The notes under the pieces were generated by a model. It searched no databases and had not been told where the DNA came from. It saw only the letters and a list, made by a program, of their open reading frames with translations. A stretch of DNA of 64,000 nt, taken from positions 13,454,001-13,518,000 of the forward strand of contig NC_043013.1 in assembly GCF_006345805.1 (NCBI RefSeq), written 5' to 3'. The stretch comes from Octopus sinensis (taxonomy: Eukaryota). The position numbers were made by a program, and so were the translations under genes. Below are positions 3,075-61,475 of the stretch, one piece after another (position 1 is the first letter of the stretch; each line of letters starts with the position of its first letter).

Positions 3075-3252
3075 CTATGGTTCTTGCTGCTTTGTATAAA
3101 CCACGCCCAACAGCTTCAGTATGTGGGTTCAACTGAATCTCTTTTCTTCCCCCAATCACAGAAATAAGCAAACTTGGTAAACGAATATTCCATGTAGATC
3201 TTACCAAACACATCATAATCTCCATAGGGGTTTGGTGATCCACACGAACAAA
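3075..3252 (-). CDS. TRPM: TRPM-like SLOG exon, copy A1 (FVRVDHQTPME...PSLLISVIGGRK...GLYKAARTI)
   Basis: tacatatAG|178 nt, open frame|GTataa, phase 0 to 1. Matches TRPM [YF]VRV...W.L..P.LLISV.GG...GL.KAA.T pattern. Confidence 0.92.
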
Positions 3253-3544
3253 CTATATGTAGAAAAAAGAAACATTGTATTAATGTAACCTAATGTTTAA
3301 TAAAATGGAAAAAATAATTCAGTTACTGATAATTTGGTGAATAAATTTATTGTTTAGAGTTATTGCTTGTATCCATAATATAGAGAATTAACAATAAATA
3401 TTTGAAAACTTAGAGGTTCCTCCTGTCACAGATGAAATCAAGAAAATTCAAGCAACAATTTCAATGAATATTATCCACAGATGTTATTGTAATAATTACT
3501 TATTATAATATGTTTAATATCTTATGTTAAATATCTTCTATACT

Positions 3545-3747
3545 CTTACTCATTTACTTGTTTTAGTCATTTGACTGCGGCCATGCTGAAGCACCGCCTT
3601 TAGTCGAGCAAATCGACCCCGGGACTTATTGTTTGTAAGCCCAGTACTTATTCTATCGGTCTCTTTTTGCCGAACCGCTAAGTGACGGGGACGTAAACAC
3701 ACCAGCATCGGTTGTCAAGCAATGCTAGGGGGACAAACACAGGCACA

Positions 3748-3795
<48 letters not shown>

Positions 3796-3969
3796 CATAT
3801 ATACGACAGGCTTCTTTCAGTTTCCGTCTACCAAATCCACTCACATGGCATTGGTTGGCCCGGGGCTATAGCAGAAGACACTTGCCCAAGGTGCCACGCA
3901 GTGGGACTGAACCCGGAACCAAGTGGTTGGTAAGCAAGCTACTTACCACACAGCCACTCCTACGCCTAT
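3545..3969 (-). mobile_element. tRNA-derived SINE family 1 with internal (CA)n(TA)n
   Basis: Head AGGAGTGGCTGTGTGGTAAG...GGTTCAGTCCC; body shared with 16990-17370 and 34297-34699. Confidence 0.9.
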
Positions 3970-4249
3970 ATTGCAACACTTTTGAATTTTTCTATCATAC
4001 ATAGAGTTTAGCCATAAATATAATATTTAGAATTAGTGATTTCTTTAAACAATTCTTTACAAGAAAATATTATGTTATCTCTCTCCTGTTTTGTAATACT
4101 TATTTCAATCATTCCGTCACAACAGAGTAAATTTCGAATATCAATGTCATATGCAGCTCAGAATTAGTATAATTCACTCCAGTTTAATATAATTCATAAC
4201 ATCACAAGAGTAAAATAAACTATTGCCCAAGTTGTACGCATGCAAGGGG

Positions 4250-4410
4250 GTGTGCATGCATGCGTATGTGTATGCACGCACATCAGTACATACACACACA
4301 TATTCATACACAGACACATAATTCATACATACATACATACATACATACATACATACATACATACATACATACATACATACATACAAACATACATACATAC
4401 ACACACACAT
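4250..4410. repeat. (TACA)n / (CA)n microsatellite
   Basis: Tetranucleotide run; source of spurious YIHT/VCMY ORFs. Confidence 0.95.
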
Positions 4411-4900
4411 TATGGCATCGAATACTAAAATCACAGCTTACATCGAGTTCAAGCAGAACTTCACGTCTTATATACATAAGGTACTGCAAGGGATAACAAT
4501 ACCGACAAGAGTTTGGAAAAGCACCACTGACATGATGTAATCTACGAGTGACGAATTTGTAAGAGAACAAGTAACTCAAATTCAAGCTCCTTGCTTTTGG
4601 ACAAAAAAATGTCGTCCTGCTATATATTGCCACAGTAACTTTGTTTCCACATATGGCTGATCCAAAGAGACTGATCCAAAGGATAATGATAATCCAAAAT
4701 GGATTAACTCACCGCACCCCAATAACATAATGGAGATAGAAAAAATAGAACAGTTGGATTTTATGATGAAATCCAAAGCTAAAAATGACTTCACAAATCA
4801 CTAGCTACAACAGCATGATAGATTCTCCAAATGGTATGAGAATTGTCATCGAGAAACACTCACAAGCCAACTGGTCACCCTCAAACACGATTTACGAGCA
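4410..4900 (+). mobile_element. Possible Penelope-like RT remnant
   Basis: Degraded INSPHPNNIMEIEKIEQLDF resembles the LN..HP.I.FT.E.E...L.FLD motif; stops and frameshifts present. Confidence 0.35.
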
Positions 4901-5699
4901 GTAAATGAACAACGCTGCTATTGTAAAAAATTGCACACAATTTTCCCGAAACCCACAAACTCTATATCGCAGTATGATCAGTGATATTATTGTAGTGGAC
5001 TTCATTTAGGCATAGAGTAGATTCGAACCTGAATCGACAAATTTCCTTTCACATTTCAACAGCACTTTTGTCATAAAGAGACATTAAGTTGACAGCAATA
5101 AAATGAACACATGGCTTTTGCTAAGTTGAATTATGTCTTTGCCACTTGACTCTTCTAACCTTTTGTATGCGATGGGGAGTTGAATTGAGATAACAGTCAA
5201 GCCCTCAAAGTATATCCATTGTCTTTGCAGCATAGCTATCTTTCTAACTAGTTTTGTATAGTTATAAATACTAGAATTTGCTAAGGAAATATCAGTTAGT
5301 GAACAGAGGCAACTAGAAATGGCCACCGGCAGACAGCCACTTGAGACAAATTGCTAGGGGAAGAAAGAAAACAATATGAGACATACAACTTCCCACTACT
5401 CTCTGACATTCACTAACTCAATTTTGTTTTCTACAACATTACCCTATCTCTATCCTTTTACTACTACATAATGACGAGATCACAAACACACCTATACAAG
5501 AAGAAATTAACCCTCTTAACTTTGCATGCTTTTCCACTTATATTATTACACACACCTGCCCGTCGAGGCATGGCATTATATTAAGTAACGGTAAATAAAA
5601 AAATTTGAAGCCAACATAACTTTAATCTCTGTTCTTCTTGCATCTTCTTTTATTTTGCACATCTACAACATCAATATCCGTTACAATCGTTAACTGCCA

Positions 5700-7150
5700 A
5701 CAATCAACATATATCATTACACAATTACTGTGACAATTGATGACCACTGACTTCGATTTCGCATACCGTTGCACTATCAAAGCAGCAAATTCTCTTCGCA
5801 CGGAAGACCTAGAGTCATTCTGGCGGGAAATCCGGTATATAAAGAAAGAACACAACCATGATGCAGCAGAGCTAAACGACATACGAAGGGAGTATTGTGT
5901 AAATGCCTCTCCCAAACATCTAACATCATCAGCGAAACACTCCTGATGGTTATTATGTAACTGCCGAAAGGAAAACCATCTGGGAGAGACCTGGTAACAT
6001 GCTACAGGTACAGAAATCTCACATTCTTCAGAGAAATTCTCATGGCCTTGCTGCAAAAAAGAACGAATGCAGAGCTAGATATACCAGATTGGCTAACGTT
6101 CGCACGTAATACGACTGCCCGCAAGAACGAAGAGTCCAATGTGACCAAAAACTATAGGCTTGAACTTTACGCAGGTTGCCTGAATAAATCTCCCCAGGAC
6201 CATTATCAAACAAATGGTGTGATAACTCACGAAGTGGCAGGGGGAAAGAAAGGAGTTTGCAGCTGTACTGGACAGGTCCTCTTTAACAAAGTTGCCCTGA
6301 AAGAAGTTAAGCAGCATCGTTGGAACATCTTAACAATATGGCTAGACTGCAAGAAGGTGTTTGAATCTGTGCTCACTCATGGATGACCACAACGTGGTCT
6401 ACACAGTTATCACTGACAACTATTAATGCAACACCTATTGGTACAAACAGGATTAAGCTATCAACAGGCGCATTCCAGGGCGATATTCTATCGGTAATTT
6501 TGTCTATATTGGCAGTGAACACTTTGTCGTTCCTGTTAACAAGATGCCAAAGCTACATGGCTGGACAGACGGAGAAAATAAGGCATTTTACCACAGTGCA
6601 GAAAGGAAATGAAGAATGGAGTCCTCCCACTAGTGTGTTAGGGTCCAACCGATAAAGAATAAAGTCTAACCATTGCTAGATTTTTGGGAATTGAATGAGC
6701 ACGTATAATGCTTTTAGGGCGGTGAAATTTTGCGGGACAGGGGCTGACAACAGGAACGACTACGATCGTCGATGTTAAGTCGGTATATCTACAGCTCTGA
6801 GAAATAGTGGTGTTACTATCTGGTGAGGTACAAGAACAGAATATATTTCCTGATCCGGCTGGCATTCGGTTTCAGTGCAGAACCAAAAATCATGGCGAAG
6901 GTTCTTAGGACGATCTTGATGACCAAGGTAGCACAGGCTACGAGTTCCTACACATATCGCATTCTGGATAGATTAGTATGTGCAGTTGGTAGAGTAAATT
7001 GTGGGTCATTTGAGGTGGTGTGAGTTGACCGCAAACCACCGAGGCTATAGGAGGCATTGCGCTGAGGCTCAAACACGAAAGAGGTAAGGTGGGCAGACCC
7101 GTATTTTAGAGAGGAAATGGGATTTGAGATCTGAGTGAGCACATGAGTAG
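5700..7150 (+). mobile_element. Degenerate R4/Dong-like LINE RT region
   Basis: SFWREI..EHNHDA, IPDWLT...KNYR, WLDCKKVFESV, GAFQGDILS.ILSILAVNTLSFLL across several frames. Confidence 0.7.
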
Positions 7151-7399
7151 GTTAGAACTGCTCTCAATATGCGGAAAACTGGTAGAGCACTATCCTATAA
7201 CAGGATGGCTCCAAAGGGCATGAAGCTGCATCAAGAGGCGATCTGAGGAAGTGAAGCAGAAAAAATGAGTTAGAAGAGAGGTGCCATGATGCAAGACGTC
7301 TTGGAGAGAGTGAAAACAGGGGATCCAGTGAAGGGCACCTCTTCGTCCCAATATTTTGTCATCTCTTTCGGATTCAAAATTCTGAAATCAGCTTTCACT

Positions 7400-8520
7400 A
7401 CTTAGTTCTACGTTATCTTTTCCACAAGAGCCAACCATTTACAATGATCAGCATGTCATTATACAGCTAGCCCCTTTCATAACCATCATATGGTCATATC
7501 AATATAGTCTTCACCCTCGAACGCATATGATTCCTCTTATGCCTAACTTTTCTCTTAAATACATTTATACTTTGTTGTTCATATACACAGATTTTTCACA
7601 TCCAATGGAGTATAGGTTTTCACATGTCCACTGCATTTAGAGCCCACATCTTATTACTATGTAGCACTGTTGTTTGTATATAGCCATCATACAATCAGTT
7701 TTTCATTCTGATAGGGAAGCATTTTGTTACCAACAGAGGCAAAAACTCTTGAAATTTCTCCAGCCTGTTTTTATTTTAGTAGCTATAACTTCAGAACAAC
7801 CGCTCCACTGATGGGTAATAGAAACTATCTTTTTTGTTTAGGGATCTTCCTGAGCATTTCAGAAAATCTATTTCCTATGCACATTTAGAATTTCTTTGCT
7901 AGTGTGCATCAACTGCATATGGAGTCTACTTTCTCTGTTAAACTGTCTGTGATACTATGGCAACTCGTGTGTTTCTATAGTTTGCACTAAGTATACCGCA
8001 TGGAATTTCTAATAGTATCTCTGTATAGGGTTTGTGTGGCTGTCATAAGCTATTCTTCTGCTGCTAGCTTCTTCTTTGACCTCACCTTTTCAGAGTAAGG
8101 AACTCTGTGAAACGTTTTCTGCAGATCAATGAATGCTCTGCAGTAACTTCCTCAAAACATGGATTTTTTAATACTTATCTATAGCACAGAACCGAACTTT
8201 ATCTCGTTTCGTCTTTTTCTGTAATTGCTTGAGCTGTAGTTGTTCCCATAACTTTCGTGTCCTTGTCCTGCAATTTGATACTCCTGTGATTACCTTTCTA
8301 TAGCATCTCCTTTATGCTTGTAACAATTGTTGTAATGCTGTAATGCCAGTCACTAGGTATACCACTTTCCTGTATAATCTGATTGACTATACAAGTAACT
8401 AAGCCATATCCCACAGTGCCAAGTATTTTAAACCTTATAATAGTAATTGCTAATGGGATTTCTCCTGCTTTAATATTCTTCAGGGCCCTATCTATCATAT
8501 TGCTACCAGCTAGAATGACT
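7400..8520 (-). mobile_element. Degenerate RTE-clade LINE RT fragment
   Basis: LKNIKAGE...VGYGLVTCIVNQIIQESGIPSDW, homologous to ORF 25605-26204. Confidence 0.7.
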
Positions 8521-8628
8521 AGTCATTCTGTTGGAAAGATCTTTCTTCCATGTTATCTCCACATATAGTAACCTTAAATGATAGCACTTTCAAGTTATTT
8601 TTTACCTCTCAGAATCACTTCTATCCAT

Positions 8629-8683
<55 letters not shown>

Positions 8684-8705
8684 CACACACACATACACAC
8701 ACACC
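8629..8705. repeat. (CA)n microsatellite
   Basis: Dinucleotide run. Confidence 0.97.
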
Positions 8706-8874
8706 AATATGAAAAATAACAGCCAACTATACAAAAAAAAAGAAACGATATGTAAAAATATTCACAAAAAGCATGTAAAATGTTGTTGCTATACAAATCC
8801 AAGGACAAAATATTCAGCTGATTATTGGATAATTTCTACAAACAACATCAATAAAAAGCAAGCAAAAAGAATAC

Positions 8875-8959
8875 CGTTGCATTTTCCTGATAATATCCCC
8901 AAAAATGTATTTCACCAAATGCATTACAGGGTTTTGATGGCTCCTCATCTTTAGAATTT
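8875..8959 (-). CDS. TRPM: TRPM-like exon, copy A1 (NSKDEEPSKPCNAFGEIHFWGYYQENAT)
   Basis: gtctttgatAG|85 nt|GTattc, phase 2 to 0. P-x-[DN]-A-F-G-E-I-x-F motif of MHR1; same length and acceptor as 45436-45520. Confidence 0.88.
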
Positions 8960-9479
8960 CTATCAAAGACAAACAGAAACCAAATGAACTGTTGAAGTAA
9001 AGTTGTAATGGGGAAGGTAGAAGAGGAAAAATGACAAAATCAAAAGATAAAGAACAACTCCAATGAATATTACCGACATAGATACATAAATCCATACACG
9101 GAAATAAATAAATAAATTTTAATTTAGTTGAATCAAATAATGATTACTTTTAAATAAACTGAAAAGGAAAAATAAGAAATATGTTGCCGTCAAAATAAAT
9201 TAAGAAAATGGGTTTCACCATTCCACATCTGAGGTATGATAAGACCATATTCAGAGAGAAAAAGATTACTCAACTGACTGGCACGAAGTCACTTACAAAT
9301 ACACACCAAATTCTGACCCATACTGTGCTGTGTCTTCTCTGCCTTTTCTACCGCTACTACAAATAGCCTCTGCTGGATGGTCTCTGACCACCTTATCCAG
9401 GTATCACTGATACACACATCAACACCCTATCTCAACAGGAACACCCTCTCTCCGTTCTCCTCTACTAGAAATCTCATAC

Positions 9480-10600
9480 CTACAACCAATTCCGCATTCC
9501 ATACCATCAATCGTCAAAATGACAGGACATAATACTGGCATTGTCATAAGACTGTCTCCTGCAGTATTCAAAATTTCTATTGGCTTACCCGAAAGAACGT
9601 AACACACAGTAACTGAAAGCTGAGCAACATTCTGGTGTTGGATCTACAGAAACAGGGAAATACTTGGCAGTTTTAAAATCTGCAACAATATAATTCTTGA
9701 TATGTTTTGCCATCAACAGAACAATTTCTTCGTAGATGGTAGGTGATAAGTACGACTGCTTACCACTTCCAGTATTGCCAAAGGTTTTCAAGTGACCCAT
9801 AAGAAATGGATCAAATTGTTCCATAATTCTCAGAAAATTTCTCAGTCAACTATCTCTTCACTACCTCTAAATGCCAGACCTCTCTCAACTAGAAATATTG
9901 TCACAGTCACTACATGAAAGAATGCAATACTTCAGTCCAGTATTTCTTGTTTCCCTGGACTTGTTCTTCCAATACCTTGTTAACATGAGATGATCCCTGC
10001 ATAAAAGATGGGGCTTGACTTTGTTCTTCTGTTTTCAGTTTCTCCTCTGCTTTTCTCATTTCAGTAAAGCCTTCCTTGTTGGAAAACCTGTCATGTTGAC
10101 CTTGCAGGAAAGTGCAGTAAAAACAATAAACCTTACCCTCTGATGAGCTGTACAGGGGTCACATCTTTAAAAAAACTGCTCACCATTGTCATGAATGGTA
10201 TAAAACATTAAATTTTTTAAACAACGATAGTGCCCAGCCAGTTTGCCTTCACTTGGTTTATAATGGTGTCGAGATACTGGGAAGGTGTCGGAGGCATTTT
10301 TATTTTAACATATGGATGATTTTGCCTGAAAGAACATGGACAAATACTTTTCTCTGACAGAAAATCATATGATTGTGTCTGGATCCCATGATGCTACTTT
10401 GCTATTCATGACAGTAGGACATGAGGATTCTTCACCTTGAATGTTTTGATGTAATACGTTCTTCCTCTTTTCTGCAGATCTACTTAGGAATGCAGCTGGT
10501 TCTTCAAAAGGAACGTCTGATACTGTTTCTACATTATTAGCCTCTAGGCTTTCTTTTTTCAAAGAAAATAACAATTCTACACAGTGTTGTGTCTTTTCTA
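9480..10600 (-). mobile_element. Degenerate hAT-superfamily (ZMYM1-like) transposase
   Basis: TTF-type zinc finger LYSSSEGKVYCFYC..F...GF..RKAEEKL (about 10030-10160) and DUF4371-like FDPFLMGHL...SYLSPTIYEEIV..MAK...AKYFPVSVDPTP (9585-9824). Confidence 0.78.
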
Positions 10601-11249
10601 ATACAGCAGCATGTTTTCATTTTGTTCTTTGTAAATTTTACTCGTCTGAGATCCAGTCAATTGAATTTTCTGTGGCATTCTTAGATATTTTGTGTGTGAG
10701 TATAATATATATTCTGAATAGAAGCAAAAGAAAATAATTTTAAAAAAATGAATAAATAATGTTGGAACTGATAGCAGCAATGTAGACATACTTCATTTAA
10801 TCCTGCTGCAGGTATATTAAGCCAGTCACTTTATGCATATGTGTTACTCCTATGTCTTTTGCAGATAAATAGAGCAGCTGCCAAAGTTAATAAAAATTGA
10901 ATAGAAAAATGTTCAAGGATTACAGATTAATGATTTCGTTTCCATAAAATTACTTTTCTTCAAAATTATGCTTCACTTCCATGAAAATGAAAAGGTGCCA
11001 GAATGACAGGTATAAGCCACTATCATCTCGGAAAGTTTTGCAAAAAGTGGAAATAGTATCGTAATCAACATTAGACGAATTATATTTCTTTTTAAAAACA
11101 AAACGAGAATAACATTAACAGCAAATTGTAGTACATCAAAAAAGTTAAAGACAGAAACATTTTTCGATATTCAGGTTAAATTTTTTTTGTAGATTCCCCA
11201 TTACTGTTGGATTTATTTTAATGAAACCACTGGCGGTGGAATATGAGCT

Positions 11250-11875
11250 ATGACAACAGATGACTTGCGAACACTTGAAAGAAACGAAGCTAGAATGCTC
11301 CGCTGGATGTCAGAGTGTATATGATTTAAGAGGAAAACTATATGATTTAAGAGGCATCAGATGTTGTGTGCAAGAGAAGAGACTGCGCTGGTTTGGTCAT
11401 GTGTTGCGTGTGGATGAGGACGGTTGCATAAAGAAGAGCTGATCCCTAATTGTGGAGAGAACTTGTGGATGGAATACATGGGGGAAGATGCGATGGGACG
11501 AAATGGTGAGAAAGTATCTTCAGACACTGGGCTACACTGAGGAAATATCAAGGGACCGGGAGCTGTGATGATCTGCTGTACTTGAAAAGACATACCACGC
11601 TAAGTAATATCCCGGTCATCCATATACACAGGCATGTGATTTACAGGTTCTAGTGCCATGTAAAATGAACCCGTGCCGGTGGCACGTAAAGTGCACCCAG
11701 CACACTCTGCAAAGTGGTTGGCGTTAGGAAGGGCATCCAGCCCTAGAAACCATGTAAAAACAGACAATTGGAGTCTGGAGAGCTTCTTGGATGGCCAGCT
11801 CCTGTCACACCGTCAAACCCATAGCAGCAAGGTGGATGGACGTTAAACAGTGATGATGATGATGATGATGATGAT

Positions 11876-11880
<5 letters not shown>
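11250..11880 (+). mobile_element. RTE LINE 3' fragment with (GAT)n tail
   Basis: IRCCVQEKRLRWFGHVLRVDED, then 3' UTR TGGTTGGCGTTAGGAAGGGCATCCAGC and (ATG)n(GAG)n. Confidence 0.85.
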
Positions 11881-11906
<26 letters not shown>

Positions 11907-14017
11907 AGGAGGAGGAGGATGTTTCTCTTACATGCCCCTACATCAAAATTAAATCTTCACAGCAACACATTTTCATTGCAAAAGATATCTTTCTCCAATA
12001 AAATGTCTTTTGCTTCAATGTTTGCCATCTTTTTCATTTCCAATTGGCTAAATACGCTGACTTTCTTTTAAATTTTCCATATATTTTCTTTCTATGATTT
12101 ACATTTGCTGCGGAACACAAAGACCAGGATTTCTCATATTTTGGATTTCATGTTTTAATTACTGCTTTCGCCCTAACATCTTGGGAAAGAGGGGAAACTG
12201 GCATTTATAGAATTTTTAAGTAACAATAAAGCTAGACATTTTGATTTTCATCTCAAACTTCCAAAATGCATGTTCGATTTAACCTTTTGAGACTTCTTCA
12301 TATTTAATATTATATAAGAAAACACTTCTAACAATATACGTTGTCGTGGTTATAACTCATCATCTATGATGAACTCATTTCAGTTTCTTCACATAAAATT
12401 AGATCAAGTCCCCAGCCAGAAAAGTAAAATTTCAAAATCTCTCTCTCTCTCTCTCTCTCTCGCTCTCTCCATAAATATAATTAGGATCATTATTAGCAGA
12501 TGCTGTGGATTTCCCACTGAGTTCACAAACCAGTTTTAACTTTTGCTTAATTCACTTTAATTTGTTCTTTATATAAAAGAGAAACAAATCGGCATCACAA
12601 AACCTAACCTCTTTCACTCATAAACATGTGTGTGATTGTTAAAATTATTTATGCCTTTGATGTATTAAGAGTAATGATTGAACAGAAATGATATACTGTT
12701 ATATCAAACACCAATTAGATTTAACTTTTGTTAGTCTTCTGTTGATCTCTATTTTTATGCTTTTCATAAATAATACCGGTGATCTAAGGGAGTAGGATTT
12801 GGAAATGTAACAATTTAATATATTCCCAAATTATTATGAGAAAACCCCTGAGATTTTATTTCTCTGCTTCTATCTCTTCACTTCTTTTCTTAAGTGCTAA
12901 GCGTTTAAGAAAAAAAAGAAAGAAAACGGAAATAAGAAAATCGACTGTATATAATTCCTAAATGTTTTAAAATGAACATAGTCCAACTGGCCTCATGATA
13001 CTAAGTTATGATGTATTGGGATGCTCAAAGAAAAGCGAAATAACGTTATTTCCAGCTACTAGGACACTTAAAAATGAGGTGGAAAATTGAATTATATAGA
13101 AATATTATTTTATGTTCTCTCCCTCGTAAGAAAAAATCTTGTAATAATAAAAAATATAAGCCCTGCGTGGTTCTTTCTCTTTAAAGGAAAACCTCACCCT
13201 CCCTTCTATTTCTAGGTAACTCACTTACTTTCTCTCTCTCTCTCTCTCTTACTCAAAATCATCTGTAGGTAGCAGCAACAACAGTTACCTGTCACATTTC
13301 CCACGTGTGATTCGAACGATGAATGCTACACACAAGACAAAAGGAAAGGTACCATGGCGAGATGAAACATATTGGAAATTAATTCTAAGTCATCCTCACG
13401 TGATAAGCAGCGTGGAAATACGACAAGAGATCCCACGTTTGCACCCGAGAGAAACACAGAGGGGTGTGCATGTAGTTTGTAAAGGAAATGGTAATCAAGT
13501 CTGTATGAAGAACAATCTAACAAGGCGAATAAGCACTGGAGGGGGAAAATTAACAAGAGAAATAAAACAATATCTTTGAAAAACTACTGGAATGAAATCC
13601 TAAACATGTAAGAGACTTTCCCTCATTCTATCACTGTCTCTCGCCTTCTGCATCTCTAATCCACTGTTAAAAGTAAAGAAAATAGAAAACCTTACTCTCT
13701 CCCTATTTCTTAGTAAACTTTCTTTCTCATCTTCTCTTATTCCGAAAGCAACTGTAGGTGGCAGCACCAACAGTCGCCAGTCAAATTTCACATAAGAAAA
13801 AATGACTTATATGGAAATCAACAATTAAGAGATTCTTTTAGTTACCTCTCCCGCCCATTGCTTTTGGATATCCACATCTCTAAGCGATGTTTTTGTATGC
13901 TAATTACTGGAAAAATCTCAACTGATAAAAATGCTTCAATTTACATTACCATAACTGAAATCCTAATATATGTGTACTTATACATTGTAAAATTTAGGGG
14001 CATATTTCTTGAATTAC

Positions 14018-14058
14018 CTTAGTTTTATGTTTTCCTCTATCCATTTCTTATCAGATTT
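14018..14058 (-). CDS. TRPM: TRPM-like exon, copy A1 (KSDKKWIEENIKLR)
   Basis: Minus strand ttttattttcAG|41 nt|GTaatt, phase 0 to 2. Encodes the W-I-x-E-N-I-K motif of the TRPM extreme N-terminus; homologous to 41682-41719. Family call only, no specific paralog. Confidence 0.8.
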
Positions 14059-14569
14059 CTGAAAATAAAAGAAAATAATATGAATGTTTGCAGGAATGAT
14101 GAGATTTCAGCATCTGACATTAATAACACAGAGTTTCAAATTCTATAACAAATTATACAGAGACGACATAACTGAACAGAAATACTATAATAAATAAGTA
14201 TAACTACAATTATCTGGAAGAGATAATCCAATCCATATTAACACAAGTACACATGAATTTGTTTTTTACTGATTTATAGTTTTTAGCATGGTACACTGGT
14301 TTTGACATGGGATTGGAATGAATCAAATCTTCCGGATAGAAACAGAGCCACATGATGATAAGAGAATTTTATTTCACCAATTTAAACATCTGTCAGGCTG
14401 AGAAAGTTATACAATACACCTAATGCATATTTAAAAAATAGAGACTAAAATGAAAGGAAGGAAAGAACAGATGCTAAAGATAAATGATCTTGTTGTTTAA
14501 TATATTTAATATTTTTGTAGCCTCCATCAATTGAAAGATCTATTCATTGGTGAAACCTTCAAGATAAAT

Positions 14570-16353: not shown

Positions 16354-16453
16354 NNNNNNNNNNNNNNNNNNNNNNNNNNNNNNNNNNNNNNNNNNNNNNN
16401 NNNNNNNNNNNNNNNNNNNNNNNNNNNNNNNNNNNNNNNNNNNNNNNNNNNNN
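16354..16453. other. Assembly gap (exactly 100 N)
   Basis: Run of 100 N; a transposase remnant runs into its left edge and unrelated sequence follows. Confidence 0.99.
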
Positions 16454-19544: not shown

Positions 19545-19654
19545 AGAGAGAAGTCAAGATTCCAGTTGTTGTAGTAATGGTTGGAGGTGGACCTGGAACT
19601 CTGAAGTCAGTGTATGATTCAATATCACGCAACATCCCAGTTGTAATAGTAAAG
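19545..19654 (+). CDS. TRPM: TRPM-like exon, group A2 (REVKIPVVVVMVGGGPGTLKSVYDSISRNIPVVIVK)
   Basis: tttAG|110 nt|GTcagt, phase 1 to 0. Canonical PVV...GGPGT...PVV MHR2 motif. Exact acceptor ambiguous because of the AGAGAG run. Confidence 0.92.
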
Positions 19655-27909: not shown

Positions 27910-27998
27910 GATTCTGGTCGAGCAGCAGATATTATGGCAGATGCTTACCAAACAAAACTCGAAAATTCAAATGAAGAAGATGAAGACAAAAATGACAG
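27910..27998 (+). CDS. TRPM: TRPM-like exon, group A2 (DSGRAADIMADAYQTKLENSNEEDEDKND)
   Basis: ttatcAG|89 nt|GTttgt, phase 0 to 2. SGRAAD motif; in frame with the preceding exon. Confidence 0.92.
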
Positions 27999-29301: not shown

Positions 29302-29486
29302 GAAACTGAAAACTGATATCAGAGAGCAAATTATTAAAGAATTTGAAAAGGAATTGAAAGGAAAAGGGATAGATAACTTGGTTGACTATGTGTTGATGTC
29401 CCTAAAACGACCAAACTTGCTGACTGTTTATGATAAAGATTCAGAGAAAGAATTTGATCTAACAATGTTCAAAGCTGTATTCAAGG
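29302..29486 (+). CDS. TRPM: TRPM-like exon, group A2 (KLKTDIREQ...PNLLTVYDKDSEKEFDLTMFKAVFK)
   Basis: ttctaAG|185 nt open|GTaaga, phase 2 to 1. LLTVY...DL...KA..K motif that follows SGRAAD in TRPMs. Confidence 0.88.
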
Positions 29487-34280: not shown

Positions 34281-34296
34281 CATTAACTATTTTGAT

Positions 34297-34699: not shown

Positions 34700-35379
34700 A
34701 AGAACATTTTAATATCAACACACTGTTTCATGTAAAATCTATATTACAGCAAAGAACAACATAGAAAATATGAGGCTCGGATTGGCATGGAACAAACCTG
34801 ATGTTCTAAAACGTCTAATATCTGAAAGAGAAGCTCCCTGGGAAGTAAGATAATATCTTTTTTTATCACTTCATGTTGTGAACAATTATTAATTTAACAT
34901 TTTTTTTCTTCTTGAGAGGATGAAGAGTAAAATGTTTTCAATACAAATGTATTTTAAATATCGTTTTAATAATTTGAATGCTTGTAAAATAATTATTGCT
35001 TGTTTGTTAAATTTTTTCACTGGAGATAGTCGAAGGATCACTTTAGGCAGGAATAGCAAGTGGGAAATTTATGAACCTTGTGTATGTGTGTGTGCATACT
35101 TATTTGTCAGAATGTGTATGATGCTGCTGTGTACATCCATGTGCGTTTATCTCTGTCTGTCTGTCTGTCTCTCCCTATAAAAAAAAACAAAAAAAAAATA
35201 AAACTTAGATATGTTTCGACCAAAGATTGGTCCAGGCCATGTCTAACTTAATAGCACCACCTGATAGGATTATTCGAATCCTGTTTAAGTCAAGTTTTGT
35301 TCAAGTAGTGAGTTCTTGTTGGGTGAGTTGTATCTAGTTTTGTTCAAGTAGTGAGTTCTTGTTGGGTGAGTTGTATCCA

Positions 35380-38300
35380 ATTATGGGTGGCTTATCTGGT
35401 ATTCTTTGAAGGAATCTATCCAGACTCTGTTTAAAGTTAATGGGATCCTTTTCCTCTTTGATCTCTCTCGGGACAATGTTAAATAGGGCAGGGCCTGTTG
35501 AGGAAAAGAAATTATGTTGCAGTGTACATGTATGTTGTGATCTTCAATTTGGCAGGGGATGTATAGCCCGTGGTCCAAGTCTTGGATGAACCTTGAAGCT
35601 AATGTTTAGGTCGTTTGGGCAAAGTTGGCGGTATATTTTCCGCATCGTACAAATGATGTACCGCTCACGGCGACGCTGGAGAGAGTAGAGTTTCAAGGCT
35701 TTAAGGCGATCCCAATAATAGAGAGCAGCCATGCCTTCAATTCGTTTAGTGAGTGCCCTCTGGGATGACTCAATTCTGGAGATGTTTTGTCTTGTGTGAG
35801 GAGACCACAGTGGGCAGCAGTATTCAAGGTGTGGCCGTACAAAGGAGGAAAAAAGTGGTATGATGACACCTTGTTCTCTGGACCGGAAAGTTCTTAAGAT
35901 CCAGGAACTCATCCTACGAGCTATATCGACCTTCTTGTTGATGTGTGCACTCCAACTGAGATCGTCATCAACAATTACACCCATGTCTCTGATATTGTTA
36001 GAGGCTGTGAGCGGTTCCCCTGAAGGAAGAGAGTATGGCTGTTTTAGTGAGGAGTTTCTTCCAAAATGCATCAGCTCAAATTTTCCCTCGTTCAGTTGCA
36101 TTTTGTTTCTGTCTGCCCATTGACTCACGGCATATAGATCAGACTGGAGTTGAGTTCGGTCTGCTTCTTCATTGACGATTTGCTGGAGCTTGGTGTCATC
36201 AGCAAATATTTTCAGTTTGCAGTGATGTACGACACTGGAAAGGTCGTTTATGTAGATTATGAAAAGTAGCGGACCCAAGACAGTCCCCTGGGGGACACCG
36301 CTGGTGACTTTTGCTGGGCTTGAGTGGACTCCACAACTACAACATGTTGTGTTCTATTCGCCAGGAAATACTTGATCCAGTGTAGAACTTTTCCACGGAT
36401 TCCAACATTTGCCAATTTTGATAGTAGGATATTATGGTCTACCCTGTTGAACGCTTACTGAAGTCAAGAATATTGACATCAGAGGTTCGAACCTGTTCCC
36501 AAGGCTTTGAGTACATCTTCAATGTGATGTAAGAACTGTGTTAGACAGTCCCTGCCACAGCGGAAGCCATGCTGATTTGCATTTAGGAGTTCTGGGTCTC
36601 CAGGAAGTTAGCCATCCTTGATCTTAACACTCTTCAAACACTTTGATGATGTGGGAGGTGAGTGAGTGAGATGGGCGATAGTTGAGTGCGAGGGATCTGT
36701 TTCCCTGTTTTTGAAAACGGGGATGACGACTGGGATAGAAACTGTCTTGGTATATAACCTGCGTCTAACGAATTTCTCCAGAGGTTGGTCAGAGGGACTG
36801 CAAGTTGGTGTTTACATTCCTTCAGGAGACTAGCGGGAATCTATCAGGGCCTACAGCAGAGTAGTATTTGACCTCATTTATTGCTGCTACAATGTCAGTG
36901 GGAGTGAGGTTATGTCTGCAATTTTGTGTTGGGAGTCAACTTCGTTCGCTTCTCTTACGTCAATATCAGGGGAACACTAAAGACAGAGCAGTATGTTTCT
37001 GCAGTATTTCTGCCATTCTTTAGCATCGTGTTGGGGAATGCCGTTAGCATCAATCAATGGCCCAATGGGTGAGACAGTGGTTCTATGCTTATTTGCATAG
37101 GAATAGAACACTTTTGGGTTCTGTTTGATGTTTTTGATTACCCACTGTTCTCCGCAGCTCTTTGATTTTCAATGGGTTTTCATGTCGTTCTGCAGATGAA
37201 GTTTTTCCAGCTCTAGCCTTTTCATTGTTGTTGAACGTGGATGTTGTTTGTGGGAATATTTTAATTGGTTGATTTTTTTGTTAAGTCTTTTGATGCGCCT
37301 GATGAGTGTTTTCTTCTTTTTAGGGAGCCGATTTTCTGTTTGTGTTAGTAGATTTCGTGGGAGCGTGTTTAGACCATGTATATGTGACAATGTTTTCAAA
37401 GTGCTGCCATGCGGTCTCAATATGGGTGGAATTGAGAGTAAAAGACCAGTCGATGAAAGACAGATCCTTTCTGATTGCTCCCCAGTCCGCTTTGTGGAAG
37501 TTTATGTTATCAAATGAGTGCCATGGAGTGGGATTGGCTGGTTTGGTTTTTATATGTCGGGAATTGAAATTGCAGAGTACCATGTCGTGATCTGAGAGGA
37601 GAGTTTTTTCAACTGAAATACTGTGAACGAAGCTAGAGTGATTGGTCAATACCAGATCCAAGATCGTTTTATTCTGTCTCGTTGGTTCGAGCACAAGCTG
37701 AGTAGGAAGTATTCATCCATTAGATTAAAGAGCAGTTCCACTGCTGCTCTATCTGATGTAGAGCACTTGCCTAACTTTAGTGTATTTGTGGGCCAGTTCA
37801 CATGAGGGAGGTTAAAATCACCCATTACTAGTATGTTTCCGGAGAGTGTACTTCCGAAGGAAGGAAGGACTTAACTTTGCTAAGGCACTCTTCAAAGCAC
37901 TTTAAAGGTGCTTGGGGAGGCCTGTAAAGACCAACAATGACTATGTCCTTGGCCTTGCTGAATAGTGATACAGATTCACAATAGCCATTTGAAAAATATG
38001 TCCTTGGCATCAAGTAAGAAGGAGTCATGGATAAAGATGGCTGTCCCTCCCTTATTTCGGTTTGTACGATCCACACGAACAATGGTAAAATCTTTTTTTT
38101 CACCTCGGCGTCTATATGGGTGTTGTTCAGGTGAGTCTCGGTAAGGATTAAAGAAAGGGAAGCAATGTGTCGTTTCGGCAAGCCAACTCTCTATATATGG
38201 GATCTTCCATTTTTGGGCAATAATTGATGGGTTGATGCCACGTACATTTAATGGAATGTCGAGGTAAGTGAAGTTTGATGTTTGCATTGTTCAAGTTGTT

Positions 38301-39600
38301 CAGTGGTAACAATTGGGTAGGTCTTGTATGGAGCTGTGTGTGTATGATTTTCTTGTTGGTAGTGAGTGTGGGTCCTTGTGATTTGCATAGGTGGGTTGCT
38401 GATAGCTCGTTGGATCTCCTGGCTTAGGTCGGCCTTCATATTTTCTAGGTAAGTCAGTAAAAAAGAGAGTTACCACTTTGGTGCCCCACTGGTCGGAGGA
38501 TACATATTTTCATGTTTGTGTTACTTGGTGTTATGGTTTTTCATGGTTCCGTCTTCGTTGTTTGATTGTAGGAGGGGGAAACGTGGTTGTATGTTGCTTT
38601 AATTGTTGTCGAAGATCTCCTCTGTTGCTGTTTATATATATTTGTGATCGTTTTGTGCCCTTCAGTGGTGGTGGTTGCATTCTGGGTTCAGGCACATCCT
38701 TAGTGACACAGAAGTTTGGCCACAGTTTTAGGATGAAAGAGGTGCATCTATTGCCTTTGTACATCCATATTTGGATCAGGACCATGGATTCTGTATTTAG
38801 GACAGTATTTGGGGTGGAGGTGAGGGCAGTTTTTTCCCGTTATACCGTGTGTGGACAGGTGCCTTAACAAGTCTACGACATAGGGTGGGATGGGAAAAAG
38901 CACAGCGTCCTTGTTGTTGTTGCCGCTGGGGCCAAATTTACAGTTGCCTTGAGCATAGTAAGGCAGGGCAGGGTGTTTGATATGGTGTATGGGTGATTTT
39001 TCTATAGCAGAGTGTTGTTGTTGCTGTAGCAGCAGTGAAACTTGACTTGCAACAGCAGAGCTAGCAGGTGGAATCGGGTCAGGTACTGGTGATGTAGTAG
39101 CAGAAACAGGCTGTTGTGATAGTGAGTCCTGTGGAATGGGTGGAATGAGGTCAGATGTTTGTTGCTTGACCTGTTGGAGTTGGGTCATTTGGTACACTAC
39201 ATTCATTGACAAGGATTGTTTTTAGTTTTGCCATGTGCGTGTGAATAATAGGAAATATTCTGACAATCTCTTTGTTTTATTTTCTATCTGTTTACAGATC
39301 TGTGAAAGGATTGCTTTGCTAATTTTTCAGCTATTTACTGTAAACATAGCTTCATTGTGGTGAGTGTACCAAGCGTATCATTGCAGTGTTCATTTTCAAC
39401 CCAGTGGCGTTTTTGAATATTATCGGCCATATTCAGTGGGACAGTATTATACACTGTACGTTAGTTATTGATGAAAAGTTTGTGTCGATATATCGGAAAT
39501 GCGTGGCTATATCTGAGTGGGTGTGGGAGAGTCAGTGTATATAGTACAAATCAGGATGAGCGCTGATTTAATACAGATCAAGAAAAAGAATTGTACTCAC
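35380..39600 (-). mobile_element. Near full-length degenerate CR1-clade LINE (ORF1 with CCCH-like fingers; ORF2 APE + RT)
   Basis: RT 35544-36278 (GPLLFIIYINDL, KIFADDTKL, VRPHLEYCC, SLQRRRERY); APE 37828-38287 (LTETHL, VGLYRPP) and ILDLVLTN..SDHD (37320-37694); Cys/His repeats 38640-38975. Confidence 0.9.
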
Positions 39601-41681: not shown

Positions 41682-41719
41682 GATGTAAAGAAATGGATTC
41701 AGGAAAACATAAAATTGAG
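41682..41719 (+). CDS. TRPM: TRPM-like exon, copy B (DVKKWIQENIKLR)
   Basis: ttttattttcAG|38 nt|GTaatt, phase 0 to 2; paralog of 14018-14058. Confidence 0.8.
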
Positions 41720-45435: not shown

Positions 45436-45520
45436 AAACCTTAGAGACGAAGAGGCATCAAATCCCTGTGATGCATTTGGTGAGGTAAAGTTTGTAGAAC
45501 ATGATCAGAAAATTGCAAAG
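45436..45520 (+). CDS. TRPM: TRPM-like exon, copy B (NLRDEEASNPCDAFGEVKFVEHDQKIAK)
   Basis: gtctttgatAG|85 nt|GTaatt, phase 2 to 0; DAFGEVKF motif. Confidence 0.9.
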
Positions 45521-48098: not shown

Positions 48099-48102
<4 letters not shown>

Positions 48103-48250: not shown

Positions 48251-48251
48251 C

Positions 48252-48300
<49 letters not shown>

Positions 48301-52113: not shown

Positions 52114-52293
52114 TTTGTTCGTGTGGATCACCAAACCCCCATGGATATTATAATTAATTTGATAATATATCATTGGAATTTCTCATGCCAAACTTACTTA
52201 TTTCTGTGATTGGGGGAAGAGAAGACGTCCAGTTGAATGAACCTACTAAAGAAGCTCTTGGGCACAGTTTAGTTAAAGCTGCAAGAACAACAG
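52114..52293 (+). CDS. TRPM: TRPM-like SLOG exon, copy B, with 1-nt frameshift near 52180 (FVRVDHQTPMDII...|PNLLISVIGGRE...LVKAARTT)
   Basis: tacatatAG|180 nt|GTaaaa. 181 nt would be needed for phase 0 to 1; only 8 nt lie between TGGAAT and CCA versus 9 in copy A1. Confidence 0.82.
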
Positions 52294-52323
52294 GTAAAAA
52301 GGTTTTAGCACACTTATTGTGAA

Positions 52324-52370
<47 letters not shown>

Positions 52371-57159: not shown

Positions 57160-57235
<76 letters not shown>

Positions 57236-57236
57236 C
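57143..57236. repeat. (TAC)n(TAA)n microsatellite
   Basis: Trinucleotide runs. Confidence 0.95.
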
Positions 57237-57239
57237 TAA

Positions 57240-58945
57240 TGAACCATGTGAGAGTTATTAGGAGGAAAGGTTACTTATCTGGAGTAGAAATATCTCAGAT
57301 TAGTGAGAGTCTGAGAGACCCTGCAAATGAGCTACAAACGTTGGCTGCAGTTGAAAATAGAGAGGTGGGAGATGAAAGCAGGGAGAAGAGTAGACAGGAA
57401 GAAGAGGGGAATAGTGATGGGGCTGTTAAAGATAAGGAACAGGAACATTAAGCAGTGAACTCTGATATTGTGGTGGGTGGACATGCAAGGGAAATGATCC
57501 AACTAGATAATGAATTGCTTGAAATTCAAAGACGTCTCACCGAGTTGATGAATGCTCCAGAAAAAAATCCCCATGAATATGAGAAGGGTAGATAGGAGTA
57601 TGATAAATAAAGTAACACAAAAATAAATACTGTCATACCATCCATCCAGATGGAGGACATAACACAAACAAGGAATCTTCTCCGAGCTATTGCACTACTT
57701 GTTGAGGAGAAATTACAGCTTTCTTAAGCAAAAAATGGTGGAGCCAAAGAACCATATTGGGAACGACGCTTTAAAAGGGACATAATGTGAGCAAGGCAAG
57801 ATCTAGGGAAAATTAAGCAATGGTTAAGAGGAAACTAGAAAAATGGGAAAAAGAAAGACCGAGAAAAATTAGAGAAGAAATATAAAATATGGAAGAACGG
57901 GTTTGATGCAGTAATAGAGCAGTTAAAACAGAGGATCATGGCAAAAATCCAAAAGATCAGAAATAAGGAATAAGCCGTTAGAATAAGCAATGAACAGGAA
58001 TAAGCAGTTAGAGGGGAACATATTGTTCAAAAATAACTAGAAGCAATTCTTTCGAATGTTAGAAGGAGACAATGGTGAAAATGTTGCTCCTGATGCAAAT
58101 CAAGCCAAGGAGTTCTGGAGCGGATTATGGGGAAACGATGTGGTACATAAAAGGGATGCAATATGGAAAGGAAATATCAAGGCAGAATTACAAGGAGGAA
58201 AGAAACAAAGGAATATTGTCATAAGCACAGGTGATGTGAAAGAACAAATGGGTAAAGTGTCTAACTGGAAAGCCCCAAGACCAGATGGGATTCATGGCTT
58301 TTGGCCGAAGAGATGCACGCGGTGCAGGAAAGACTAGCAGCCCAATTGAATGAGTGTGTCCATCCCTGTGTGGATGGTGACTGGGAGGACAACACTTATA
58401 ATAAAAGATAGAAGGGGAATATTGTGGAAAACTACCGTCCCATAGTATGCCTGAGGATAATCTGGAAGATACTCACTGGAATATGTGTGGCAAAGACACA
58501 CACTTTCCTGGCACAGAAAGAAATACTACCAAAGGAACAAATAGAATGTAGGAAGAGTTCTCAGGGTAGCAAGGATCACCTAATCATAGATAAAACAGTT
58601 TTGAAGTATTGTAAAAAGCAACATACAAACATGTATATGGCTTAGATTGACTTCAGGAAGGCATATGATATGGTGCCTCATTCTTGGACCATTGAATGCC
58701 TGCAGGTGTTTAGTATTGCTGACAACATCACAAATTTCTTTATGCATAGCATAAAAGATTGGTAAACCAAATTGTACTCAAGTAATGTATTCCTTGGAGA
58801 AGTTAATATTAAAAAGGGAATCTTCCAAGGTGACTCGTTCTCACCGTTAGTTTTTGTAATTGCACTAATACTCATAACAATGACACTTAGGAAAGTTAAG
58901 ATGGGTTACAAATGTGGGAAGAAAGGCCCATCCTTGAACTATCTT
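57240..58945 (+). mobile_element. R4/Dong-like LINE, 5' half
   Basis: EFWSGLW, NWKAPRPDG, ENYRPIVCL, KDHLIIDK, IDFRKAYDMVPHSW, GIFQGDSFSPLVF; cut by an RTE fragment. Confidence 0.85.
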
Positions 58946-59600
58946 CTGTTGCATCACACAACTCCAGCAGCTTGGTTTCCTCCCCATTGCGGGAACCAAA
59001 TCCAGAGCCACCATCTACACCATGGAATCCCGCTAGATGTTGTCCAATATGATTGTTGAAGTCACCAACAACAAAGAGAAGGTTCCTGTCATTCATCAAC
59101 AAGATAGTCTATAAGAGGGTGTCATAAAATCGGTCTTTCTGTTCATCAGGTAGCCCTGGCTGAGGAGCATATGCCAAGACAATGGTTGCTAATCCATGTT
59201 GCTGAACTAGTCTAAGCTTAAGTATTTTATCACAGACTTTGACTACCTCGATTACCTTATCAACCCATTTCTCTGTAAGGAGTACAGTCAACCCCATCAG
59301 CGTTTGCTACTCAGAAAATCTTATACTTGTGTTCTTTGCCTGTGAGGAACCTAACAGAACTTCCTCTTCACCTTACTTCTTGGATACAGCATAAATCAAC
59401 ACGTCTCCGTTCAAGCATCTCAACAATTTCACCAGACCTACCTTTGAATATACCAACATTAAGTGTGCTAACTCTGAAGGTGTGAGAGGTGTGGGACAGC
59501 GAGACCCTGGGATGGAGGACAGTAGCATTTTCCATCTGAAAAGGAAGCATTTGAAAGATCTCGTAAACATACAATCGTCTTCAACCTGCATTCACTAACT
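58946..59600 (-). mobile_element. RTE LINE 5' (APE endonuclease) fragment
   Basis: TLNVG..KGRSGEIVEMLERRRVDLCCIQEVR; AYAPQPGL.DEQKDRFYD; VGDFNNHIG. Confidence 0.88.
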
Positions 59601-61311
59601 GTCATTTTATTCGCTATATAATCACTTCATTCAGTAGAAGATAGACACTAGGTAGGGATGGAGGGGGAAGGGAAAGGGAAGCGTTCTGTATAGTAAAGAA
59701 AATAATTAGAGAAAACAAAAGAAAGTAAAATATGGAGACAACTAAAGAAATAATTGAAACCAAAAATGTTTAAAAAAGTAAACAAAAGTTGAGTATGGGA
59801 CGCAACACAATCATTAGCCTAAAATATAACGATGGAAAACAGCTATTATTAGAAAGAATAAATGAATTCTATGAAAACATATATCATTCAAAGAACGAAG
59901 TTTCTCAAACAGTAAATTCAAACGAAATGATCTGCATAATCAGTTATTATTTACCTGAGTTCATGATGTCACATCCAGGTAATCCATGTAATAGATGTCA
60001 AGTTGGAAATATATGTGTCCCAAATCCAGCATTTCTAAGTTCCACAGCAATGATTTCCATAGTAAAATATATAGAAGGGACAAAAGGGGAGATTCTCGAC
60101 CGACCAAGCACACAGTGTAAAAGGGTTTCAATAGATGACCATTTCTTTTGATTATTGAACAATACAATTTCCAAGTAACAATAATCAAACCCAATCAAAT
60201 TTATCAGTATCCTGGAATAATATGGTTGTGAGTTTATTGATTTCATTTTGCAATTATGCATTTTCCGGTTCCGCCCCAATTTGTAACACCTTGGTAACTG
60301 TCTTTGATTATACTATGGGATAACCAAAGATTTGTGATTGAGATTGGCAGACCTCATCCATCACTCAGCTTGGTATGTCACTCTGTTTCTTCTCTGACTG
60401 AAATAAAAATTCGGATCTATACCTTACACTCTCTATGATGTATGAGGCAGAGGATGTTTAGGATCGATCCCTCAAGAATTGCACAAATCTGAGTATTCCT
60501 AATACACTATCTGTCACTAGCATCAATCACTCTGTGAGCACTTAAAGTTATTGGCTACATCCTTCTTGCTTGAGTCCTTCCTCCTCAGGGCCACCTCTCC
60601 TCAACTAACATGGCTGGGAAGGGAATTCTCTCAGTATTCTCAGATCCATGCTGAGATATATCTTATTCCATACTTGCATAGGATTTATCTACAAAATACT
60701 AGCAGCTGAATCTATTTTATTTGTAATTCCAAAGGATTTATCTCTTCTTTGTAATAATAATTCATTTTGACTTGTTATAAAGGTTTTCTAGCTGAGCTGT
60801 TTGTTGCTGTTGAAACCGAGGTCAAGCTTAATTCAACAGACCTATGTTCAAAATCATTCCAGCAATGACCATCTCCAGTTATCAATATAGAATAAAATAT
60901 GCTGGCTGCCGATGACTATATCTGAAAAAGGCTGAATAAGCATATTGTTGTATTTAGGTTTTTGTTTCTTTCAGTTATGAGTTCAAATTCTGCTTGGGTT
61001 GTATTTTTGTTTTACATGTTTTGTCAAGGACTGATTAGAAAATCGATAATTGAGTTCTAGATTGATTCAGTATATCATATCCTTACTTCCATAATGAGGA
61101 ATATATCAATGATTAGATTAACCGCAGTTAATGACTGGTGCATATTTCATCAAGCTTACACGGACAAAGAGAAAATTCAGCCTTTTTGTGTGAAGCCTGA
61201 ATGTGACGGAATATAACAAAATGCCATACGGGTATTTTGTCCAAAAACATACTGTAGTTTTAGAATAAGAAATAAATGTTTGAATATAATTATTGATCTC
61301 TTGTTTTGCAG

Positions 61312-61475
61312 ATGCCTGGATCATAAGTGAAGGTTTACATAGTGGAGTTGTGAAATATATTGGGGAAGCTATATCTGATAATGAAAATAAAGTGGCTGAC
61401 ATGAAAAAAGTGAAAACCATTGGTATTGCACGGTGGAACTGTGTACAAAACAAAGAATCCCTAGTGAATAAGGAG
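61312..61475 (+). CDS. TRPM: TRPM-like SLOG exon, copy B (DAWIISEGLHSGVVKYIGEA...KTIGIARWNCVQNKESLVNKE)
   Basis: ttgttttgcAG|164 nt|GTaaat, phase 1 to 0. AWII..G...GV.K..GEA and IGIA.W motifs. Confidence 0.93.

Follow-up and report, generated by a model that had tools for sequence, protein, structure and literature searches.

The MHR1/2 SLOG domain forms the orthosteric ADP-ribose (ADPR) site of the TRPM2 channel and has relatives among bacterial SLOG proteins that sense immune signals of the cyclic-ADPR type. Here we describe a 64-kb stretch of Octopus sinensis chromosome CM016875.1 (hereafter the window, with positions counted from its first nucleotide), which contains exons of this module on both strands, in blocks named A1, A2 and B. 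Exons were mapped with tblastn and by direct reading of splice sites, and all transcripts and proteins cited are computational gene models. A composite SLOG peptide derived from the window shows 98% and 94% identity to two O. sinensis RefSeq models, P0001 (XP_029647073.1, 221 amino acids) and P0002 (216 amino acids), which carry the RefSeq name "TRPM member-like 2 isoform X1/X2". The locus encoding them (L001; CM016875.1 13,463,577-13,516,209) is identical to window positions 9577-62209.

A1 lies on the minus strand. Its exon 1 (14018..14058; KSDKKWIEENIKL) is an exact match to residues 144-156 of P0164, the product of the gene LOC115221043, and represents exon 1 of SLOG unit U1 of that gene; this exon is internal and is preceded by an AG acceptor. 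Exon 2 (8875..8959; NSKDEEPSKPCNAFGEIHFWGYYQENAT), with AG/GT borders, and exon 3 (3075..3252; FVRVDHQTPMEIMM...LLISVIGGRKEIQ...KAARTI), which is intact and 178 nucleotides (nt) long, matched P0164 residues 157-185 and 186-244, respectively, at 100% in tblastn. All three A1 exons are intact. A1 is thus identical to P0164 residues 144-244, the front of unit U1, and its gene runs on leftwards beyond the window after exon 3 (3075).

An assembly gap (16354..16453) separates the A1 contig from the contig bearing A2 and B, both of which lie on the plus strand. A2 comprises exon 6 (19545..19654; REVKIPVVVVMVGGGPGTLKSVYDSISRNIPVVIVK), which is of the U2 type and is entered in phase 1, exon 7 (27910..27998; DSGRAADIMADAYQTKLENSNEEDEDKND), which retains the arginine equivalent to R358 of human TRPM2, and exon 8 (29302..29486; KLKTDIREQ...LLTVYDKDSEKEFDLTMFKAVFK), the LLTVY..KAVFK exon, which ends in phase 1. 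It is followed by a 95-nt linker exon (34750..34844; AKNNIENMRLGLAWNKPDVLKRLISEREAPWE) with AG/GT borders, entered in phase 1 and left in phase 0. B begins 12.2 kb downstream of A2 with the KWIQENIK exon (exon 1, 41682..41719; DVKKWIQENIKL), which starts in phase 0 and, like exon 2 (45436..45520; NLRDEEASNPCDAFGEVKFVEHDQKIAK), is of the U3 type. Exon 3 (52114..52293) has a 1-nt deletion near 52183-52186, and after exon 4 (61312..61475; AWIISEGLHSGVVKYIGEA...NKESLVNKE) the unit runs on rightwards beyond the window. AG/GT borders were found at all SLOG or linker exons (11/11).

The initial annotation of this DNA had already placed the LLTVY..KAVFK exon ending at 29486 in phase 1 and the KWIQENIK exon at 41682 in phase 0, 12 kb further on, and its exon coordinates and phases agree with our map; what had been missed is that A1 lies on the opposite strand, that a linker exon exists and that B is frameshifted. 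The module had also been described as present twice in tandem. However, A1 is encoded on the minus strand, A2 and B are encoded on the plus strand, and the gap between A1 and A2 is non-continuous (see below).

When 106 TRPM-family proteins of at least 900 amino acids were compared with the whole window by tblastn, they matched the SLOG and linker exons, and no MHR3/4 body, transmembrane exon or TRP box was found, in line with the earlier failure to see an MHR4, transmembrane or TRP-box exon. One extra match (59440-59559, minus strand) corresponds to a part of the P0023 model that lies beyond the SLOG unit, and looks like transposon-derived sequence taken into that model. Exon 5 (GSWPA..LDPNHSHFILVDDG) was not found in the window by relaxed tblastn. 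Nor did the window yield N-terminal, acidic-tail or other linker exons, the matches being exon 1 motifs and two short exons of O. vulgaris models in A1 intron 1. Scans of the window for tRNAs and Rfam families gave no matches.

The linker exon and the multi-SLOG gene family

The linker exon is homologous to the first MHR3 (AWNR) exon of true channels; it carries the motif AWNK and encodes the first ~30 MHR3 residues. The initial annotation had reported no W-N-R exon in the interval between A2 and B, yet it had deduced that an unseen exon would be needed to bridge phase 1 and phase 0, and the exon at 34750-34844 has exactly these phases. In the RefSeq model XP_029647073 the 29486 donor is spliced to the linker and the linker to 41682. 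P0001 reads A2 exon 6 (from an internal methionine), exons 7 and 8, the linker, and B exons 1, 2 and 3. The linker is closest to those that join units U2 and U3 in related genes (77-91% identity in O. sinensis and O. vulgaris relatives, 72% in P0165 of O. bimaculoides), and it matches the linkers of P0164, P0019 and P0018 as well as the channel MHR3 start.

Exon 1 of a unit starts in phase 0, exons 1 and 2 together and exons 3 and 4 together each close a codon, exon 6 is entered in phase 1, exon 8 is left in phase 1, and the linker restores phase 0. Phase 0 is found both at the end of the first MHR3 exon and at the beginning of the first SLOG exon, so that one copy of the block is spliced in frame to the next with no need for channel exons; an example of a predicted junction peptide between units is ...EAPWEDVKKWIQENIK. 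The tandem modules are built by duplication of this phase-matched block, which comprises the SLOG exons together with the first MHR3 exon. From the gene models of three species we infer that real proteins are made from such blocks.

A library search with P0003 retrieved octopus proteins with 3-4 SLOG stretches, and a second homologue search supplied their names. According to Pfam, P0164 (O. sinensis LOC115221043, XP_036366249.1, 1423 amino acids) contains four stretches of the MHR1/2 SLOG domain (LSDAT_euk, PF18139; E = 3e-204). There are likewise four in P0165 (O. bimaculoides XP_014773893.1, 1419 amino acids), three in P0018 (O. sinensis LOC115221041, 1272 amino acids) and four to five in P0183 (O. 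vulgaris, found via the P0001 cluster, 1427 amino acids). All units also matched PF18171. No Pfam match to Ion_trans (PF00520) was obtained for these four proteins, and none to TRPM2-like MHR3/4 (PF25508) for the same proteins and P0001. The SLOG match of P0001 itself is partial (profile positions 185-251 of 266). Further O. vulgaris members of the family are P0019, P0020, P0166, P0167 and P0168.

The genes of this family span 180-320 kb. That of P0164 occupies 320 kb on the minus strand of the window, from ~158 kb to its left to ~98 kb to its right, and the P0001 gene is nested antisense within it. LOC115221041 (248 kb) lies tail-to-tail with LOC115221043, 8 kb past the 3' end of the latter. 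O. sinensis has two full multi-SLOG genes plus fragments on unplaced scaffolds. The five multi-SLOG loci looked up in O. vulgaris (P0020, P0167, P0168, P0019 and P0183) are separate genes, 180-260 kb in size, and none has an antisense gene nested in it.

P0164 and P0165 are colinear, with 77.5% identity overall. Compared unit by unit, O. sinensis and O. bimaculoides share 76-82% identity, as against 45-63% between different units, and the order U1-U4 is kept in O. sinensis, O. vulgaris and O. bimaculoides. Since the O. sinensis and O. bimaculoides proteins are colinear and their units orthologous, the four-unit order predates the split of these two species. The plus-strand exons of the window can be placed in the same scheme: the best matches of A2 are U2 backs (89-94%) and those of B are U3 fronts (91-100%), with B exons 1-2 reaching 100% (U3 of P0164, P0183 and P0019) and B exon 4 showing 100% identity to O. 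vulgaris P0019/P0167 and 91% to P0164. In view of these unit-type identities, A2, the linker and B represent the internal U2-to-U3 junction of a paralogous copy and not two genes.

Based on these observations, we suggest that the window contains pieces of two genes of an octopus multi-SLOG family, whose products would consist of 3-4 concatenated, diverged MHR1/2 modules with no channel; we put the probability of this reading at about 75%. The minus strand would carry exons 1-3 of unit U1 of LOC115221043 (A1), and the plus strand would carry the back half of a U2-type unit (A2), the 95-nt linker and a U3-type front (B), i.e. an internal junction of a paralogous copy. The family looks undescribed so far: no paper describing it was found, the genes are absent from a cephalopod TRP survey (PMC13402157) and from a metazoan TRPM study (PMC13143021), and RefSeq and UniProt label the proteins only as "uncharacterized" or "TRPM SLOG domain-containing".

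Self-comparison of the window with blastn revealed that 2984..14393 (minus) is paralogous, in inverted orientation, to 41354-52390, with 66-77% nucleotide identity including introns. A recent inverted segmental duplication was considered and rejected, as the two segments hold different unit types (U1 and U3) and the synonymous divergence (dS) is ~0.43. For exons 2-3 of the U1 and U3 fronts, dS is 0.43 and the ratio of nonsynonymous to synonymous divergence (dN/dS) is 0.59.

Contig continuity, channel relatives and alternative explanations

No exon or reading frame spans the gap at 16354-16453, the nearest being A1 exon 1 (minus, left) and A2 exon 6 (plus, right). An unplaced O. sinensis scaffold of 52.8 kb (L002, VCDQ01003289.1; no Ns in the portion examined) aligns to the window exactly from 16454 to 29054, with 92-97% identity, and holds a further 16.3 kb upstream of the 16454-equivalent, which has only dispersed repeats in common with the left contig. 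Since L002 runs past this point into unrelated DNA, the sequences on either side of the gap are not continuous, and the "copy A" that combined A1 with A2 is a chimera. A U2-type exon 5 is located at 10001-10156 of L002, ~10 kb before its exon 6, and this comparison indicates that the natural upstream partner of A2 is a U2-type exon 5 and not A1. Flipping the left contig to give a colinear A1-A2 unit was also considered and rejected: the exon 5 of L002 is of the U2 and not the U1 type, and U1 of P0164 is complete without A2.

Several further features were observed around this region. Cysteine-rich, transposon-like open reading frames (ORFs; 14887-16334, plus strand; no Pfam match) adjoin the gap on its left side, the end of the left contig lying within this element. 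The sequence GGGPGTLK of the window is replaced by GGELETLK in exon 6 of L002, and these clustered changes suggest that gene conversion has taken place between units. In P0006, a partial RefSeq model from this unplaced scaffold, the 34-amino-acid stretch after exon 7 corresponds to the window intron between exons 7 and 8 (28567-28668, plus strand), where it is 100% identical, ~570 bp beyond the exon 7 donor.

As assembled, the plus-strand copy is defective. The window contains neither exons 1-5 of the A2 unit nor N-terminal exons for this copy, and B exon 3 has 180 nt against the 181 expected (the U4 homologue has 181 nt and A1 exon 3 has 178 nt). The alignment puts the deletion, a -1 frameshift, at TCA-TGCC near 52183-52186, where relatives read NFSLPNLL or DFSLPNLL and imply TCATTGCC; the frame then meets a stop after 52206, which is the end of the P0001 model. 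With its 5' exons absent and B exon 3 frameshifted, this copy has no uninterrupted ORF through complete units, and the annotated product, cut at the gap on its 5' side, is therefore a 221-amino-acid fragment that holds the SLOG tail only. Trinucleotide microsatellites lie 15-30 bp beyond the exon 3 donor in both paralogous units: (ATT)27 beside A1 exon 3 (2978-3059) and (TAC)16 beside B exon 3 (52324-52370).

Octopus relatives with a channel are P0184, P0170, P0024, P0169 and P0172, which have SLOG, TRPM2-like and Ion_trans domains, and P0190 (XP_052830018) of O. bimaculoides, which Table S1 of PMC13143021 lists under TRPM-beta. On the same chromosome as the window, the O. sinensis channel gene (P0184 and its isoforms) extends over 687 kb. 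The SLOG front of its predicted isoforms X1-X4 is of the U1 type and comes from far upstream, and that of isoform X5 is the channel's own; the two sets of exons 1-5 differ and are joined to the same exon 6. In the predicted O. vulgaris protein P0169, one extra SLOG unit and an acidic tail precede the channel, giving two SLOG domains followed by Ion_trans. The predicted O. bimaculoides proteins P0022 and P0190 begin in the last exon and tail of a preceding unit and continue into the TRPM-beta channel. A layout with modules ahead of the channel is thus present in relatives as predicted isoforms. Three unrelated genes, rhophilin-like, dehydrogenase-like and a small gene of 85 amino acids, are nested within the span of the O. 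sinensis channel gene.

Not all of the evidence favours pieces of two multi-SLOG genes. The plus-strand copy as assembled cannot encode a complete SLOG domain, and dN/dS between units (0.59-0.71) points to weak constraint. P0164 and O. vulgaris P0183 are only 90% identical, for which paralogy or model errors are possible causes. The O. vulgaris models disagree on the units that they include, and P0167 and P0006 read into introns. The chaining of exons by annotators is a real risk: short exons of P0019 and P0020 (QNQPYVKIKLPPTPSQYLDTIINQ and RCDPCTAHQR) map to 10253-10330 and 10128-10166 on the minus strand, within A1 intron 1, with 77-88% identity, and could be cryptic or alternative exons, or annotation noise. 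No Logan-derived protein was found close to the family, which is known from gene models. A rival explanation is that the multi-SLOG genes are annotation artefacts, i.e. exon chains put together from tandem, pseudogenised TRPM 5' fragments, with no such proteins in existence. It is favoured by the reliance on gene models, by the inconsistency of the O. vulgaris models, by the dN/dS between units and by the very large spans (180-320 kb, and 687 kb for the channel gene). We nevertheless find it unlikely, since uninterrupted ORFs of 1419-1427 amino acids with the same U1-U4 order occur in three independently assembled and annotated species, unit-specific residues are kept across species, and the phase-matched linker exon is conserved.

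It is a serious possibility, although we do not favour it, that the frameshift is real and that A2, the linker and B form a dead, 5'-truncated partial duplicate, inserted antisense in the first large intron of LOC115221043 and giving rise at most to non-coding RNA or RNA prone to nonsense-mediated decay. Besides the frameshift, the missing exons 1-5, the product restricted to a SLOG tail and the antisense nesting of the P0001 gene, this is supported by the comparison of A2 with L002, in which exons are less conserved than introns (95.4% versus 97.4% identity) and dN/dS is 2.5, on 9 differences. Against it, all splice sites are canonical, and the deletion falls in a short TT run of a paralogous region, where read polishing is probably unreliable. 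An assembly cause of the truncation and the frameshift seems somewhat more likely than a true pseudogene, because the truncation coincides exactly with the scaffold gap, because L002, an unplaced scaffold of 97% identity, carries the missing exon 5, because the counterparts in O. vulgaris are intact where the frameshift occurs and belong to complete, separate genes without antisense nesting, and because O. sinensis has family fragments on unplaced scaffolds. The idea that a transcript has A2, B and further modules as its 5' exons and closes with a single TRPM channel body, one of two proposals of the initial annotation, can draw on the predicted channel isoforms of the three octopuses described above. 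The stringing of modules is borne out by the linker, by XP_029647073 and by relatives with 3-4 units, but a single channel is not supported at this locus: on neither strand is a channel gene called over ~108 kb rightwards of the window (downstream of B) or ~168 kb leftwards of it, and multi-SLOG genes are not listed in the range of the channel gene. As P0164, P0165, P0018 and P0183 end without a channel and B is out of frame as assembled, we regard this idea as improbable. The other proposal, that A1 and A2 make up one gene for a single soluble SLOG protein, has a parallel in O. vulgaris P0019, P0020 and P0167, in which a front of the U1 type and a back of the A2 type are joined, both lying on the same strand. 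In the window, however, A1 and A2 lie on opposite strands across a non-continuous gap and belong to different genes and unit types (U1 front, U2 back). A1 is entirely part of P0164, which has its own U1 back, the A2 homologue in L002 is preceded by an exon 5 of the U2 type, the window lacks exons 4 and 5, and the 29486 donor leads to the linker and B. It is hardly conceivable that such a gene exists here. The O. sinensis assembly is unreliable in this cluster (a gap, near-identical unplaced scaffolds and a possible indel), and gene counts and calls of "truncated TRPM" need care.

The interval between A2 and B had also been described as almost all transposon debris, which was not borne out: only ~23% of it is repeated in the DNA compared, to which the reverse-transcriptase ORFs of a long interspersed nuclear element (LINE) at 35.5-38.4 kb (minus) have to be added. 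This LINE remnant (35547..38400, the latter position being approximate) lies in the intron between the linker and B and contains reverse-transcriptase and endonuclease-like ORFs, of which that at 35547-36353 matched Pfam RVT_1 (E = 1.5e-11). Two other LINE remnants are situated on the plus strand at 21.6-22.5 kb and 25.1-27.0 kb; the former is 71% identical to the 25.1-26.0 kb copy, and the ORF at 25542-26201 also matched RVT_1 (E = 8e-9). A family of ~450 bp resembling short interspersed nuclear elements (SINEs), with at least four copies in the window that are 78-87% identical to one another, was found at 3494-3957 (plus), 16990-17375 (minus), 30266-30362 (minus), 34257-34699 (plus) and 48096-48273 (minus). 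The copy at 34257..34699 ends 50 bp ahead of the linker exon. The tRNA scan detected no tRNA-like head in this family.

Putative ligand site and comparison with known systems

Each unit aligns to the full MHR1/2 region plus the first ~30 MHR3 residues of NvTRPM2 (6co7; E = 1.5e-55). NvTRPM2 and zebrafish TRPM2 (6drj and 7aov) are the closest solved structures, and the 424-amino-acid chain of 7aov is one that we take to be an isolated MHR1/2 domain. In human TRPM2, Y295 clamps ADPR, for which R302 and R358 are further contacts (PMC6759353), and the isolated human MHR1/2 domain binds ADPR (PMC13060097).

The octopus equivalents of the three contact residues Y295, R302 and R358 were assigned by motif alignment. 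U1 has F/R/P, with R at the last position in O. bimaculoides. U2, including A2 of the window, keeps both arginines and has a deletion around the tyrosine; in A2 the R358 equivalent lies in DSGRAAD. U3 has S/K/K in O. sinensis and O. vulgaris and F/K/Q in O. bimaculoides, and the channels P0024 and P0172 have F/R/R. Such a unit-specific and partly cross-species conserved pattern appears to fit diverged nucleotide-binding modules better than random decay. The members of the intact family might be cytosolic, multivalent binders of ADPR-type nucleotides with a role in buffering, sensing or modulating signals to the TRPM-beta channel nearby, although this is a speculation to which we attach limited probability.

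The units resemble TRPM-beta/TRPM2-like channels in their motifs LLISVxGG, AWIIxxG, NHSHFILVDDGT, GGGPGT and GSGRxAD, and their exon pattern is common to the multi-SLOG genes and the octopus channel paralogues P0024, P0184 and P0169. Unlike TRPM channels, the octopus chains have no MHR3/4 body, six-transmembrane pore, TRP box, C-terminal coiled coil or NUDT9H; their units are concatenated 3-4 times in one ORF, and the ADPR-contact positions are altered unit by unit. A channel-free SLOG fold is shared with the isolated MHR1/2 domain and with prokaryotic SLOG sensors (LSDAT_prok; Thoeris ThsA), for which binding of ADPR-type ligands is a feature. Those proteins, however, are single domains or effector fusions, whereas the octopus chains have 3-4 SLOGs in series and no recognisable effector.

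More than one LSDAT_euk domain per predicted protein also occurs in models from oyster (P0025) and jellyfish (P0026), and in P0033 and P0021. In contrast to the octopus units, which are joined by a linker of only ~30 amino acids, these models keep TRPM2-like MHR3/4 between or after the SLOGs, and P0026 also has a pore; they look like repeats of the whole N-terminus or fused tandem genes. In the protocadherin and UGT1A clusters, variable 5' cassettes lie upstream of a constant body. The predicted O. sinensis isoforms X1-X4 and X5, with alternative sets of exons 1-5 on the same exon 6, recall this arrangement by analogy only, as in octopus the cassettes also form chains with each other in ORFs of their own.

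It is possible, and we propose it tentatively, that octopuses possess a lineage-specific, megabase-scale cluster of giant genes for soluble chains of 3-4 diverged, TRPM2-type SLOG modules, and that the neighbouring TRPM-beta gene may draw alternative fronts or extra units from this array. The whole would be a modular system for sensing nucleotides, of a kind not yet described in animals. TRPM channels are tetramers, and their subunit count of four is the same as the number of SLOG modules in the four-unit chains.

Provided that octopuses do make the multi-SLOG proteins, these would be the first in animals to consist solely of repeated TRPM ligand-binding heads. They would then constitute a natural system for studying what SLOG domains bind and do without a pore, and how the duplication of phase-matched exon blocks builds multi-domain proteins.

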